DNA of 64,000 nucleotides from Macrostomum lignano. Taxonomy: Eukaryota. Positions 37,615 through 43,600 of the stretch are shown one piece after another. The position numbers were made by a program, and so were the translations under genes. The notes under the pieces were generated by a model, which did no database searches, was not told the DNA's origin, and saw only the letters and a program-made list of their open reading frames with translations. The stretch is taken from contig NIVC01000326.1 of the NCBI GenBank assembly GCA_002269645.1, positions 372,001 to 436,000 on the forward strand, read 5' to 3'. The number at the start of each line of letters is the position of its first letter. Position 1 is the stretch's first letter.

Positions 37615-40600
37615 TCAGCACTGCACCGGTGTGCTGCTCCCAGCCTCGGTGGCGGCTGCTCGCTCCTCGCCGCTTGTCGCAGCAGACTGATTCATCAGCG
37701 ACGTCTCCATCTCGCGTCGGAGCTCCTGATCCTCCACGATCTTCTGCTCGGCAGAAACTACGCGCCTCTTCCGGCCCAGCAAGTTGTTGTTCTCGTCGTC
37801 CTGCAACAAGCAGAGGTGATTCTGGGGATTAGCTAATCCAGGTAATCTCTCTAGCAACTCCCCAGCAAAGCCTGAGCAGCACGTGCCGTCAATCACTGCC
37901 GGCCGGAGATCGGCTTTCAATTACTGAAATCTGCCACCCAGCGCACTCCGCGATGAGAAATTCGATATCGCAGTAACCTTCGGGTGGGTCTGTTTAAAAT
38001 GTTTCACTCATCCCAACTGCTCTACTTGCAGCAGCATAGTCAGATTTTAAGCAGTCACGCGCAAGTAATTTGCTATCGCTGATAAGCTCCCTGTCAATTG
38101 TCAGCGTAGACTTTGATTAATTTTTGCGGTATAATTTTGTTACGTGGTTCTATATATTATTTGAACTTTGCACCTGGCACGGAGTGTCTCTAAATTCAGT
38201 CAACTTGGGTGTACCTGGGCCCACAGGTGTTCAAAGGGCAAGGGTGTGCTTGCCGGTACAGTGGCGATTTTCACGCGACCACGTCAGTTCGGGTTTCCAA
38301 TGCCTGTTGAAAAGGGTGTGCAGCGTGTGCTCAAGATGTCATCAGAGTCTCACCTCGCTTTTCCAGCGCACTACCAGAGCACGACGGCCGTCTTGCAGCA
38401 GCTGAGAGTAGCTCTCCTGGTGTGCCTGGCACTCCTGCCGAGTGAAGGTCTGCTCCACTACCAGCAGAATCCGGGCCCACTGTTGTTGGATAGATGGGAC
38501 AGCGTTGAGATTGCAATATACGTATTTGTTTCGATTGGAATGTTCAAGGTACAAGGTTAGACGCAGGTGGAATCCTTTCATTTCCGGGTGTAACTTGTTT
38601 AGTTACCCCCCACTGGTGCATAGACCTTTTAGTAACAGGTGTAAACCATTTAGTAACAGGTGTAAATCATTTATTCACAGGTGTAAACCGCTTAGTCACC
38701 GGTGTTAAACCCGCTTAGTCACCGGTGTTAAACCCGCTTAGTCACCGGTGTTAAACCCGCTTAGTCACCGGTGTTAAACCCACTTAGTCACCGGTGTTAA
38801 ACCCGCTTAGTCACCGGTGTTAAACCCGCTTAGTCACCGGTGTGTAACCCGCTTAGTCACCGGTGTGTAACCCGCTTAGTCACCGGTGTGTAACCCATTT
38901 GGCAAACACAATTTGCTGCACATAAGCTGAATGCGCCCATTTTTTATAAGTCCCGTAAGATGTTGACGAACCAAAATTATGCTTTAGAGCTACCTGCTTA
39001 GAAATTTATTTATGAATTTTTTTGCCACTAAAAACCGGACAGCAACAACAACCAACAATCCTTATTAGTAAGTCCATCAATATCAAATCAAAAATATCAG
39101 ATAATCCTAGCATGCAAAACTAAATAAATTGTCAGCAACCGACATTAAAGCAGAAGTTGTGCAAAAACTAATTGTAGTCAATAATTTTGAGACTAAAAGA
39201 CTCCGCCGTCCAAGACCGACTTGATCAGGACGGAAGATGATGCTCAGGTTAGCGGCTGGTCTCCCGCTAAACTCAGTCTCGAGCACTTCGATTGATCTTG
39301 TCATAGACGCGAGGAAAAGCGTCCTTGGTTCGAGCCAGCTTGTCGCGCAGCCGGTCGTATAGCCGATGGTCGAACATAGCCTCGAACTCGGACTCGGTCA
39401 TGAAGGTGTCGGCGTAGAGCATCTGGAAGCCGCGAACCTCGCGCACGTAGGCCTCCAGCCTACGCGTTGTGGCCTCAGCCTTGTACTCCGGGTTCTTGGG
39501 CGCACCGTAGGCCCCGATGTCAACGTACATCTGGGAGCGGTCGTCGCGGGGTCGCAGCATGCCGGGATTATCGGGCAAGTAGAAGGGACACAGCCACAGT
39601 GGGTACATGTTGATCTCGCGGTGGAACACCTTGATGGCACCAGCCAAGTCGGTGATCGGCACCAGCATGTCCTGGATGATCTGATGAGTTTCGTACATCT
39701 TCTTTACCGTCTCGCCTTGGGTGAGCTTCATCAGGGACACCTTGGGCGGCACGGCCCAGCCAAGCAGGTAGCGGAAAATCGGGTGGTTTCCAAACGGTAC
39801 AATGTCCTGCATCTGCCAGAAGATGCTGCGCGAATGCCTGTGATAGTAGTGCCTTGTGGGGATGAACTCAACTCCGCCACCGGTCTTGAGGAACCGCTCG
39901 ACGTGCTTGAAGAACCAGGGCTTCCAGTAGTCCCCGATGCGGTTGATGCGATCCGGGTCAGCCTGGTTGGTGGACTTGCCCACCATGACTACGCCGGACT
40001 CCGCTGAGTATACCAGGCCCTCGACGAAGTCATTCTCTTCGCGCTTGGCCGACTCATCAGCAAAGGTCTTGGAGAGCTCCTCTAGCGAATGGCAGGGGAT
40101 GTAGGTGAGCCGGACGAAAGAGTGCGCCGGAATCAGGCGGATAGTGGCGGACACGAGGAAGCCGAGAGTGCCGTAGGACCAGGGTACAGCGTAGAACAAA
40201 TCGGAGTTCTCCGTTGCGCTGCAGGTGACCACACTGCCGTCGGCCAGTACTAGTTCGTAGCTCTCACAGATGTGCTGGAAGAGGCCGTGTGCGTGCGACG
40301 AAGTCTCCACGCCGGTGCCCATGACTAAGCCACCGACGGTGAGGTCGTCCAGCTCTGGCACGATGGGAATTGTCCAGCCAAGGGGCAGCAGCGTGGCCGT
40401 CAGCTGGCCCATGGACACCATCGGCTCGCAGCGGACTGTCCTGGAGTTCGGATTCACCTCCAAGATGTCAATAAGGTTGACGTTGACATTGTAGTGTGTC
40501 TTCTTGTACTTGCCCCTGCGAAAGGACATGTTCTGCCAGCCGGGGCGCGCGGTGCACAGCTTCTGCCGACCGCCGCTGGCCGCCCAGGCTGTGATCTGAC

Positions 40601-43600
40601 GTTGCACATCCTTCACCCGAGCGTCGTGCTGTCGGGGCGCGCTGCGCAATCGAAAAATGATTTTGTTGCGCACGTAGAAGAATGCGTCGTACAGCAGCGA
40701 CAGGGGTAGCAGGAAGAGCAGCACGAACACCCAGCGGTAGTTCACCAGGATGTAAGCGAATAACTTCTCCGACATTGGAGCATTCTCCAGGCCTGCCATC
40801 GGATCCATGGCTATTTGCGATTGTTGAACTCAGCTCAAAACAGACTTTCAACGGATCGCTTTTGAGGCTGATTCAATTCTTCAACTTATATAGCATAATA
40901 GAGTTGTGAAATAACAGATCAAGGGCAAGGTTGGGCAGCCACGGGCCAAGCATAGTTGTGTTTCTGCTTCAGGGTGCACGTACGGAGTGGTCCGATTCTG
41001 CAGGCCTTGACAGTGTCACTGTCCACCCTGCCTTTCTCTCTCTCTCTTCTCAGTTTACCCTATGTACATTCCCCACTGACGGCCGACTAACAATGTACGC
41101 ATGAACATTCTAAACGAATCCCCCGTTTATTCATGCAAGCTCTGCGTGCTCTTTTTCATGCACAATCCATCTACTGTAAGTAGGACTATCTAAATATTAA
41201 CAGAAAATTTTAGAAAACATTTACGCTTATATACTGGCGACAGTGCACTAAACTCACCTGACGGAGCCATTCCTTCTGGGTCTCATTGACAGCCTCGAAG
41301 GTATGCCCCATCATGGCAATGAGCATGTTCACTAGAAGCAGCGTCACGAGGATCATGTACACCACGAAAAGGAACTGTGCGATTGGAATGGTAGGAAAAA
41401 CATTGAATTGCTTGCCTTGCACTTTTGGTATGCTCAAAGAATGCTAAAGACTTTCAGAGCAGGTTGCTCACCTTTCCCATGCTGCTGTGCGATGAGCAGT
41501 CGAACTGCTCGTAGATCTCGGCGAACTCGCCCAGCGACATGATGAACATTCCCATCAGGGCCTCGCCGGGGTCGTGGAAGATGCTGGCATCGACTCGGCG
41601 GAACACGATGAACATAGCTGAGTTGAGGAGAGATCAGGGATGTTGCTCATGGTTTGGCATGGTTAATGAGTCACGTGACTGACTCCACAACATACATTGT
41701 ACACTTCTTCCAAGCTCACCCTGCGAGAAGCCCATCATGAAGATGATGTAGATGGTGCAGAAGCGCAGCAGGTCGCCGACAACCATCCGGTAGATCATCA
41801 GCACGAAGGGTCCGACAATCTTGAAACCGCGACAGAAGAACAGGAAGTACGGAGCCGTGAACAGGATGGCGAAGACGGCGATGTAGTCTTCTACCTGCGA
41901 CTCGCAGGCCGCCCGGCAGGGCACCATGGCAACCACAAGGATGCAGGAGGTCTGGTACAGGCACCTCATGGGGGTGGCTTTCTGCGAACATTGCAGCGTG
42001 TGAAGGGTGACTTGTCAGAGTGGTGAGTGCAAACTCTGCCTGCACTCCTACCCCTGTCTGCCTGCACTTCTGCCCCTGTCTGCCTGCACTCCTGCCCCTG
42101 TCTGCCTGCACTCCTGCCCCTGTCTGCCTGCACTCCTGCCTCTGTCTGCCTGCACTCCTGCCCCTGTCTATTTTCTCTATCTTCTACCTTCTCTACTCTC
42201 TCTCTCTCTCTCTCTCTCATTCTCCCTCCCTCTCTCTCTCTCTCTCTCTCTCACTCTCTCTCTCACTCTCTCTCTCTCTCTCTCTCTCTCTCTCTCTCTC
42301 TCTCTCTCTCCATTTACCTTCTCTACTCTCTCTCTTTCTCTCTCTCACTCTCTCTCTCTCACTCTCTCTCTCTCTCTCTCTCTCTCACTCTCTCTCCCTC
42401 TCTCTCTCTCTCTCTCTCTCTCTCTCTCTCTCTCTCTCTCTCTCTCTCTCTCTCTCTCTCTCTCTCTCTCTCTCTCTCTCTCACTCTCCCTCTCTCTCTC
42501 TCTCTCTCTCCATCTCTCTCTCCATCTACCTTCTCTACTCTCTCTCCGGCTGCTTTCTCTACTCCACTGTCTATTCTGACATCTACTTCTATCAAAATAC
42601 TCGTTTCTTCCCTCAACTCTCTCCCATTTTTTGCTACAGAGTCTCAGATGAAATTAAATTCCCTCCATCACTCAACCCTCTCCCCGCACTCACCAGCATC
42701 ATCAGGTAGATTCGAAAGCCCTGGTAATAGATGTCCCTAGTTACGAAGCATAAATTAGTGGTTGCCATGACTACCACAATGCATTCGCATACGAGTCGAA
42801 GCTAAAATTATACGGAAAAAAATATTTCAAAAGCAACAAACTTTACTTCGATGGATTAAAAAACACAAAATGAACTTCAAGAATAACCCACGTAGCTCTC
42901 CCAGTCGGGGGTGGCCAGCAGGTAGCATTTGCTCTTCACCGTGGTCACCGTGGTCACCACAGTGCCGTTGGCCAGGGTGGTGTTGGTCGCCATCGACTTT
43001 GGGTATCGGTCCGTGCCGGGCCGCAGCAGAAACACCGTCAGGAAAAACACGAAATAGGCGGCGAAGGAGAAGAACATGCGGAAGAAGCTGCGGATGCAAG
43101 TGGAATCGAGTCTTAGAGGTCGAATTTTCCCATCCTCGTATCTCCCGATCTTCCATGTCCCATTTCCCATCTCCTCATTGCCCATCTCTCTATTTCCCAT
43201 CTCCCCATTTCCTATCTCCCCATTTCCCATCTCCCCATTTCCCATCTCCCCATTTCCCATCTCCCCATTTCCCATCTCCCCATTTCCCATCTCCACATTT
43301 CCCATCTCCCCATTTCCCATCTCCCCATTTCCCATCTCCCCTGTCTCTGCCACAGAGCCTTACCGTCTGCGCACATAAGTCTCCCACTTCCTTTCCAGGA
43401 GGCGAACCACCACTCCGTCCAGCATGTTGAGGTGCTCGATCTTAGACTAAAATGGAATATTACACGGGTATGCAAGGAAAGGAAATTTAGGAGCAGCACA
43501 TTGGAATGTGAAATGATTGGGGGATAGGATCTTTGGGGATCAAATGTGTCCATGGTATCAAAGGAGTCTATGGGTTCAAAGGTGTCTATAGGATCAAAGG

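Follow-up and report, generated by a model that had tools for sequence, protein, structure and literature searches.

An intact intronless DHCR24 gene is nested in an ancient intron of a Nanchung-type TRPV gene of Macrostomum lignano

Introduction

A locus of the flatworm Macrostomum lignano where a complete sterol reductase gene appears to interrupt the gene of a sensory channel raises the question whether such an arrangement is real, how it arose and if the two genes are functionally linked. The window, i.e. the whole 64,000-nucleotide stretch of DNA analysed here, matches M. lignano contig NIVC01000326.1 at 100% identity (contig coordinate = window coordinate + 372000). On its minus strand TRPV exon 10, an intronless DHCR24 and TRPV exon 11 follow one another, all in the same orientation. 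An earlier note on this DNA had described this geometry, and all of its coordinates were reproduced to the base when we re-derived the ORF, the exon ends and the splice junctions; domain and homology matches likewise confirmed a Nanchung-type TRPV as host and DHCR24 as nested gene, as well as their shared strand. We find the locus to be a real but ordinary nested gene, with an intact intronless DHCR24 lying within an ancient TRPV intron.

Results and Discussion

The host gene encodes a Nanchung-type TRPV channel

The spliced model of the host gene has an unbroken frame and only GT-AG introns, and with its 12 exons and 810 aa it shows that the exons flanking DHCR24 had been numbered correctly as 10 and 11.

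37615..48906, minus strand: TRPV host gene, Nanchung-type, 12 exons, 810 aa (spliced GT-AG model)
48906-48810, 46849-46165, 45400-45124, 44887-44738, minus strand: TRPV exons 1-4
43446-43364, 43087-42892, 42801-42694, 41981-41720, minus strand: TRPV exons 5-8
41617-41472, minus strand: TRPV exon 9
41258..41374, minus strand: TRPV exon 10, coding for S6 and the first half of the TRP box, ending ...EWLRQ (donor CAG/GTGAGT)
38354..38479, minus strand: TRPV exon 11, coding for the second half of the TRP helix, starting WARILL (Nanchung alignment and splice site)
37615..37800, minus strand: TRPV exon 12, C-terminal tail and stop codon, also inside the old chimeric model A0A1I8HD04

Exons 1-9 of the model are identical to UniProt A0A1I8HBT4, beyond which the model extends. 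The protein combines an ankyrin-repeat N-terminus (Ank families, E values down to 2e-19) with a six-TM Ion_trans domain (E=2e-11). Known here from its sequence, it is alike to the insect TRPV subunit Nanchung (PDB 9nvn-9nvs) over residues 1 to 780, with an E value of 1.3e-204 for PDB 9nvs_A as compared to 5e-105 for Inactive and 7e-63 for TRPV6, and the C-terminal 209 aa alone gave the same order of matches. We take the host to be an orthologue of Nanchung, to which it is closer than to Inactive or vertebrate TRPV1-6. A TRP box is present after S6, the host segment aligning to Nanchung EWQRQWARIVLVVE, and the protein sequence joined across exons 10 and 11 aligns gap-free to Nanchung ETRNEWQRQWARIVLVVER (PDB 9nvo_A, E=1e-60; Inactive, 2.8e-36), bearing out the proposal that the TRP box is split by an intron.

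The nested gene encodes a conserved delta(24)-sterol reductase

DHCR24 lies wholly inside one TRPV intron with consensus splice sites, which marks it, as far as the predicted exon structure goes, as a nested gene.

38480..41257, minus strand: TRPV intron 10, phase 0, 2778 nt, containing the whole of DHCR24 (splice signals and homology)
39273..40808, minus strand: DHCR24 (delta(24)-sterol reductase) CDS, 511 aa, intronless, from ATG to TGA (39275-39273)

Residues 64-197 of the ORF match the PCMH-type FAD-binding domain PF01565 FAD_binding_4 (E=4.8e-14), and the best named DHCR24 matches are spiralian delta(24)-sterol reductases with 62-65% identity over 96-100% of the query. Compared with metazoan DHCR24 (seladin-1), the nested flatworm protein, which is likewise represented here by its sequence, is 59% identical over the full length, the alignment with the mammalian enzyme covering residues 15-510 with 3 gap positions and including the N-terminal hydrophobic membrane segment. 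Its product is probably an ordinary FAD-dependent delta(24)-sterol reductase located in the ER membrane. Comparison with sequences from two related species, L001 and L006, yielded dN/dS values of 0.047-0.060. With GC3 values of 0.79 (DHCR24) and 0.83 (host), both genes look native. A search of the literature on Mlig024933 and on DHCR24 in flatworms returned nothing relevant.

DHCR24 entered a pre-existing intron

Intron 10 is the longest of the TRPV gene, and both of its junctions are phase 0 (donor CGT CAG/GTGAGT at 41258/41257, acceptor CAACAG/TGG at 38480/38479). No non-self matches above 66% were found over the exon 10/11 junction region. The nan orthologue of a scorpion has an empty 74-nt intron at the identical RQ/WA position and also shares three adjacent exon boundaries with the M. 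lignano gene, indicating that DHCR24 entered an intron that already existed. By this comparison intron 10 was present, and short, as early as in the common ancestor of flatworms and chelicerates. The predicted splice from 41258 to 38479 is supported by homology, splice signals and the shared intron position.

Three loci carry the arrangement and both genes are under purifying selection

The M. lignano genome is repeat-rich, polyploid and hard to assemble (PMC10468722), and the earlier note had named a mis-assembly or a contaminant contig as possible sources of the arrangement. The order exon 10, DHCR24, exon 11 is found on three separate contigs of GCA_002269645.1 (NIVC01000326, NIVC01001081 and NIVC01002298), which argues against mis-assembly, and the three copies of intron 10 are 98-99% identical, with paralogue-level divergence throughout. 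After the exons, the DHCR24 CDS is the least diverged part, all 10 of its differences from L003 being synonymous, and among the M. lignano copies 18 synonymous differences compare with 1 non-synonymous difference. The closest homologues of DHCR24 are animal, spiralian DHCR24s. The assembly is PacBio-based, which implies long reads across 41374-38354. Nothing spoke in favor of mis-assembly or contamination; with three contigs in agreement and a GC3 like that of the host we rejected both, and we assign a negligible probability to a chimeric assembly or contaminant DNA.

The insertion might instead have disabled the host, leaving exons 11 and 12 as relics and TRPV truncated after exon 10 or a pseudogene. 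Public models end early (A0A1I8HBT4 after exon 9), none of the three loci has a listed TRPV gene, and an AATAAA is located 127 nt into intron 10, following an in-frame stop at 41210. These premature model ends, however, look like artefacts that gene predictors produce when genes are nested on one strand. Exons 10-12 are undamaged and their splice sites match the consensus, homology of exons 11 and 12 to Nanchung runs on to residue 780, and all 12 TRPV exons lack gaps and stops in each of the three copies, with a single synonymous change in exon 11 and none in exon 12. Over the whole host gene the three loci differ in 28 codons synonymously and in 2 non-synonymously. We rejected a pseudogenised host on the basis of the intact ORFs and this 28:2 ratio and consider a disabled TRPV very improbable; both DHCR24 and its host are under purifying selection.

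DHCR24 probably forms a transcription unit of its own

Short motifs that may delimit a DHCR24 transcript flank the gene.

40885..40892, minus strand: TATATAAG, candidate TATA box of DHCR24, 84 nt ahead of the ATG (motif)
39005..39010, minus strand: AATAAA, candidate poly(A) signal of DHCR24, 263 nt past the stop (motif)

The candidate TATA box is identical in all three paralogous loci, and its position predicts a transcription start near 40862. In the alignment the 5' end of L001 falls about 57 nt ahead of the ATG and about 27 nt downstream of the TATA position; L001 and L006, contigs that may be either transcripts or genomic, contain 54 and 13 nt of 5' UTR. Taken together, the TATA box and the AATAAA suggest an independent transcription unit, and as short motifs they could also occur by chance, with another AATAAA present at 41131 and another TATA-like hexamer at 41233. 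Footprinting of the promoter across the three paralogous introns added no signal, these introns being too close (98-99% identical) to be informative, and a scan for bacterial-type promoters and terminators, a method not applicable to a eukaryote, gave background-level matches.

Trans-splicing offers a different route to a DHCR24 mRNA, as the gene may lack a promoter, be transcribed within the TRPV pre-mRNA and be freed by addition of a spliced leader, operon-like inside an intron, which would tie its expression to that of the channel. Both genes are on the same strand, and matches to the trans-splice acceptor YTNCAG are located upstream of the ATG at 41179 and 41003. No YTNCAG, however, occurs between the TATA box and the ATG, and the TATA box 84 nt upstream of the ATG is kept in 3/3 copies. 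The M. lignano spliced leader is CGGTCTCTTACTGCGAAGACTCAATTTATTGCATG (PMC8629364). When intron 10 and the 5' ends of both related-species contigs were searched for the genus-conserved leader, only chance-level matches appeared; the 54-nt and 13-nt 5' UTRs of L001 and L006 show no trace of it. Expected expression patterns differ as well: expression of Nan-type channels is confined to a few ciliated sensory neurons, but a sterol reductase that exists as sole copy and has a dN/dS of about 0.05 should be required in the gut or in general tissues. We therefore regard operon-like expression as very unlikely and favor independent transcription of DHCR24.

The intronless gene is plausibly a retrogene

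DHCR24 is multi-exon outside this lineage, as had been stated for vertebrates and as we found in Lingula, where the gene has about 8 exons (~7 introns) over 5 kb and is flanked by a UHRF1-like gene and DUF5580, with no TRPV among its neighbours. All ancestral introns are absent from the nested gene (0 as compared to about 7 in Lingula). The earlier note had interpreted it as a retroposed or intron-stripped copy, and total intron loss and the new location fit retroposition. Other marks of such an event were not found: the 3' end of DHCR24 has no poly(A) remnant, the sole A7 run (39023-39017) lying upstream of the AATAAA, no direct repeat brackets the gene as a target-site duplication, and an intron-containing parental copy was not detected, the M. 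lignano members found being the three nested intronless copies, with no other M. lignano DHCR24 entries among the best 120 matches. With functional or orphan retrogenes DHCR24 shares the absence of all introns, a new location in the intron of another gene, an intact ORF, strong purifying selection and the lack of a detectable parental copy; searches for the diagnostic poly(A) remnant and for target-site duplications came up empty, which leaves its membership in this class unproven. We consider retroposition plausible.

Alternatively, and with respect to the origin only, introns may have been lost gradually or by cDNA-mediated conversion at the old locus, followed by a DNA-level move into the TRPV intron. 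The missing poly(A) tract and target-site duplications fit this route, as does the low average intron content of M. lignano genes (~3 introns per gene, PMC10468722). The synteny comparison outside M. lignano covered the two closest relatives, as 1.6-kb contigs (L001 and L006), and a contig of 3.6 kb (L002). In L002, a 69%-identical relative, DHCR24 is also intronless, but the 1.9 kb upstream of it contain no TRPV exon, which likewise fits this route. The introns may thus have been lost before the nesting came about, or each event may have happened on its own. Against a DNA-level move, two independent events would be required instead of one for retroposition, and the TRPV host in the same genome has kept 11 introns, at least 4 of them at ancient positions. 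We deem this route a possibility, though the less likely one.

Considered jointly, the data are probably best explained by a native host/nested pair consisting of an ancient intron and a retroposed, intronless DHCR24 with its own transcription unit. In this scenario the phase-0 intron 10, short in the flatworm-chelicerate ancestor, would have split the TRP box before an intronless DHCR24 came into it in sense orientation in the Macrostomum lineage, most likely by retroposition of a processed mRNA, the copy subsequently becoming the sole DHCR24 of the genome (an 'orphan' retrogene). DHCR24 would form a unit that begins with the TATA box at 40892, has its start near 40862, spans the 511-aa ORF and closes with the AATAAA at 39010. 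For expression of the host, polymerase would have to pass the DHCR24 poly(A) site and the spliceosome would have to join 41258 to 38479 across 2.8 kb.

Same-strand nesting is a known arrangement, and functional coupling is speculative

The statement that nested genes are more often antisense to their host proved a weak premise, as a mammalian survey reports a slight excess of opposite-strand pairs but describes the orientations as 'broadly similar' (PMC11694760). The same survey counts upwards of a tenth of all mouse and human genes among host/nested pairs (PMC11694760). Like DHCR24, the nested genes of mammals and Drosophila lie fully inside comparatively long host introns; mammalian ones, however, favor 5' introns, whereas DHCR24 is located in intron 10 of 11, inside the codons of the TRP box. 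Same-strand single-exon nested genes are well known, an example being OMP, which is nested in intron 2 of CAPN5 in vertebrates and has its own promoter and an expression largely reciprocal to that of its host (PMC6549253). The OMP/CAPN5 pair differs from DHCR24/TRPV in gene families and phylum, and it is backed by expression data and by conservation from Fugu to human, whereas the flatworm pair is known from three paralogous loci of M. lignano.

Given the same-strand intronic nesting, every full-length TRPV pre-mRNA necessarily includes the DHCR24 ORF in sense orientation, as had been proposed. The further suggestion that this couples, or mutually excludes, sterol remodelling and a ciliary channel is unsupported, the flanking TATA box and poly(A) signal pointing to an independent unit, and functional coupling of DHCR24 to the channel is speculation. 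Were the sense nesting functional, DHCR24 mRNA would mature from the nan pre-mRNA, for instance through spliced-leader addition at an acceptor in the intron, or use of the DHCR24 promoter and poly(A) site would block completion of nan, and the arrangement would have been retained across macrostomids for that reason; delta-24 reduction of sterols and the ciliary TRPV would then be obligatorily co-expressed or mutually exclusive in a given cell. We judge this very improbable, and nothing here points to a mechanistic link between sterol metabolism and the channel. Any interplay of both genes may rather amount to transcriptional interference in the few channel-expressing cells than to a designed coupling.

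Consequences for annotation

The main value of these results is a better annotation of a model flatworm. UniProt A0A1I8HD04 is a DHCR24-TRPV chimera that arose from the same-strand nesting, and public models lack or truncate the full M. lignano Nanchung orthologue (810 aa, 12 exons). The pair opens no new kind of biology. The locus is a clean and datable case in which an intronless metabolic gene, present as sole copy, occupies the ancient intron within the TRP box; both genes are under purifying selection, and the nesting outlasted a recent genome duplication in 3/3 copies. As M. lignano is tractable to transgenesis, read-through and transcriptional interference between genes nested in sense could be studied on a small scale with this pair.

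Intron 10 also contains repetitive DNA.

38671..38896, no strand: 23-nt minisatellite of ~10 repeat units in the 3' portion of intron 10

The copy number of this minisatellite varies among the paralogous loci.

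A sterol reductase gene inside a TRPV intron

We assembled the model of the host gene, nan, from the partial UniProt entry A0A1I8HBT4 (exons 1-9), the C-terminal exons of the chimeric entry A0A1I8HD04 and the window sequence, which gave 12 exons encoding 810 aa, with GT-AG introns throughout and no frame breaks. The limits of intron 10 (38480-41257) and the labelling of exons 10 and 11 in the earlier note agree exactly with this model.

Exons of the spliced TRPV model
48906-48810, minus strand, TRPV exon 1
46849-46165, minus strand, TRPV exon 2
45400-45124, minus strand, TRPV exon 3
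44887-44738, minus strand, TRPV exon 4
43446-43364, minus strand, TRPV exon 5
43087-42892, minus strand, TRPV exon 6
42801-42694, minus strand, TRPV exon 7
41981-41720, minus strand, TRPV exon 8
41617-41472, minus strand, TRPV exon 9
41374-41258, minus strand, TRPV exon 10
38479-38354, minus strand, TRPV exon 11
37800-37615, minus strand, TRPV exon 12

The encoded protein contains ankyrin repeats and an ion-transport domain. In a search against all PDB sequences it matched Nanchung (9nvs_A) over residues 1 to 780 with E=1.3e-204, and Inactive (5e-105) and TRPV6 (7e-63) more weakly, confirming the host as a Nanchung-type TRPV. The frame of exon 10 stops at 41258, followed by GTGAGT, and exon 11 begins at 38479 with TGG GCC CGG (WAR...), preceded by ...CAACAG, both junctions being in phase 0. 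EWLRQ/WARILLVVE aligns without a gap to EWQRQWARIVLVVE of Nanchung across the junction, the strongest support at hand that exons 10 and 11 are probably joined in the mRNA. Read-through of the exon 10 donor would add 16 codons before the stop at 41210, with an AATAAA at 41126-41131 (minus strand) beyond it; a truncated TRPV isoform without the distal TRP helix would thus be formally possible, and the motif may be due to chance.

As the earlier note had proposed, intron 10 holds a complete, intronless sterol reductase on the same strand:

40808-39273, minus strand, DHCR24 ORF, 511 aa, ATG to TGA (ORF call)

A FAD_binding_4 domain was found in the ORF, which is 59% identical to a mammalian DHCR24 over residues 15-510 with three gap positions. 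Among named sequences it comes closest to spiralian delta(24)-sterol reductases, those of Lingula, Mytilus and nemerteans included, with 62-65% identity over almost the full length. Comparison with the related-species DHCR24 sequences L001 (93% amino acid identity) and L006 yielded dN/dS values of 0.047 (dS 0.86) and 0.060 (dS 1.39), respectively, indicating a long-standing constrained, functional gene.

The nested arrangement at three loci

Window positions 29273-50808 are 100% identical to 21.5 kb of NIVC01000326.1, contig positions being obtained by adding 372000 to those of the window, and the order TRPV exon 10, DHCR24 ORF, TRPV exons 11-12, including the spacing, is common to three contigs (the window and the M. 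lignano loci L003 and L005). The copies of intron 10 diverge by 1-3% and vary in the number of minisatellite repeats, the pattern expected of paralogous loci and not of a duplicated assembly. An assembly artefact, named in the earlier note as an alternative, was therefore rejected; so was contamination, as the GC3 values of DHCR24 (0.79) and host (0.83) make neither gene look foreign. The presence of several near-identical nested loci is accounted for by the hidden polyploidy of M. lignano, a free-living flatworm whose whole genome was recently duplicated (PMC10468722).

Two contigs of GCA_002269645.1 encode exactly the same 511 aa; all 10 DHCR24 substitutions relative to L003 are synonymous, and L005 differs by 8 synonymous changes and 1 non-synonymous change. 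A damaged host was likewise rejected, the TRPV coding sequence being intact at all three loci with 19+9 synonymous versus 2+0 non-synonymous codon differences; exon 11 contains one synonymous change between loci and exon 12 none.

Age of the intron and origin of the nested copy

In the nan orthologue of the scorpion Centruroides sculpturatus (L008 1509-1582) an intron interrupts the gene at the identical place and in phase 0 (...NEWMRQ/gt...cag/WARIVL), but it is empty and only 74 nt long. Hence, the intron is ancient and DHCR24 was inserted later. Three nearby boundaries, GFSQ/A, ..AK/V and the end of exon 11, are also common to scorpion and flatworm, which together with the TRP-box intron (RQ/WA) suggests that the exon structure in the C-terminal half of Nanchung-type TRPVs is very old.

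DHCR24 of the brachiopod Lingula has about 8 exons over 5 kb; a UHRF1-like gene flanks it on one side and unrelated genes on the other, and no TRPV was found nearby. Loss of every intron and a new location are predicted by retroposition, so this part of the earlier proposal of a retroposed copy fits, but neither an A-tract after the DHCR24 poly(A) signal nor a flanking direct repeat was found, and the intron-bearing parental DHCR24 sought was absent among the M. lignano proteins retrieved. Judged from sequence, retroposition is a plausible and the most economical origin, short of demonstration. A 69%-identical relative, L002, is also intronless; it lies on a 3.6-kb genomic-looking contig (run DRR639838) with no TRPV exon within 1.9 kb upstream of DHCR24. 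Intron loss may therefore predate nesting, or the TRPV intron may be longer in that species.

Expression signals of DHCR24

The 449 nt that separate the DHCR24 ATG from the exon 10 donor are AT-richer (GC 0.44) and contain a candidate TATA box, TATATAAG, at 40892-40885, 84 nt before the ATG and identical at all three loci. A candidate poly(A) signal, AATAAA, is located at 39010, 263 nt past the stop codon. The 5' end of L001 (1.67 kb) lies about 57 nt before its own ATG. Projected onto M. lignano DHCR24, this end falls about 27 nt past the TATA position, which would fit a TATA-directed start if L001 is a transcript. The promoter of L002 is laid out differently from that of M. lignano DHCR24, being of CCAAT type with two inverted CCAAT boxes (ATTGG, L002 1700-1900) 100-170 nt before the ATG and no TATA box.

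The DHCR24 mRNA could alternatively be produced by processing of the host TRPV transcript. In M. lignano, transcripts of about 30% of the genes receive by trans-splicing a 35-nt leader, whose sequence is strongly conserved across the genus (PMC8629364; PMC10468722). Two YTNCAG trans-splice acceptor motifs do lie upstream of the DHCR24 ATG, at 41179 and 41003, whereas the stretch from the TATA box to the ATG contains none, and no part of the leader was found on L001 or L006, leaving this route a small probability. Together with the TATA box, the AATAAA and the 5' end of L001, these observations lead us to favour DHCR24 as an independent transcription unit inside the intron, with a predicted span from about 40862 to 38990.

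Consequences of the gene geometry

It follows from the gene geometry that every full-length nan pre-mRNA includes the DHCR24 ORF in sense, as the earlier note stated: transcription must run from the predicted promoter of DHCR24 through its ORF and past its poly(A) signal, and intron 10, which at 2778 nt is longer than any other intron of the TRPV gene, must then be spliced out. Besides the true donor, the sense strand of intron 10 contains a single GT[GA]AG motif, offering few opportunities for mis-splicing. By analogy, transcriptional interference or reciprocal expression of nan and DHCR24 is conceivable as a positional by-product; reciprocal expression has been described for OMP inside CAPN5, an example of a same-strand, single-exon nested gene (PMC6549253). 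The suggested coupling of sterol remodelling to the channel is unsupported by the sequence, so that the earlier reading is partly supported: right in structure and plausible in origin.

Nested genes are common, more than one tenth of mouse and human genes belonging to host/nested pairs (PMC11694760), and the nan/DHCR24 pair is another instance, for which no publication was found in our literature search. The statement that nested genes are more often antisense holds insofar as opposite-strand pairs are in excess, but only slightly so in mouse and human (PMC11694760).

Public gene models, repeats and neighbouring genes

Of the TRPV, A0A1I8HBT4 covers no more than exons 1-9 and then reads on into the intron. 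The entry named 'Delta(24)-sterol reductase', A0A1I8HD04 (610 aa), is chimeric: it follows DHCR24 up to residue 438, bypasses the stop codon by two frame changes over short gaps (window 39221-39462) and continues into TRPV exons 11 and 12. The assembly's gene calls list no TRPV gene at any of the three loci.

Most of the longer TRPV introns (1, 2, 3, 4, 5, 7 and 10) contain either a (TC)n run or one or more minisatellites with periods of 13-33 nt and as many as 64 copies, and the repeat arrays give rise to long spurious ORFs on both strands. Past the 24-mer array downstream of TRPV follows a LIM-domain gene on the same strand. Two paralogous bHLH genes lie on opposite strands about 9 kb apart, their basic-HLH regions being almost identical.

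Repeats and neighbouring genes
38671-38896, 42035-42546, 43140-43341, 43536-44673, 45001-45121, 45586-46080, 46856-47237, 48165-48780, TRPV intron repeats
34827-36727, 24-mer array, 1.9 kb, directly downstream of the TRPV gene
L005 15526-21536 (about window 35.3 kb and below), minus strand, LIM-domain gene, annotated
52429-53187, plus strand, bHLH transcription-factor gene, single ORF, 252 aa (Pfam HLH, E ~3e-15)
61704-62447, minus strand, bHLH transcription-factor gene, single ORF, 247 aa (Pfam HLH, E ~3e-15)
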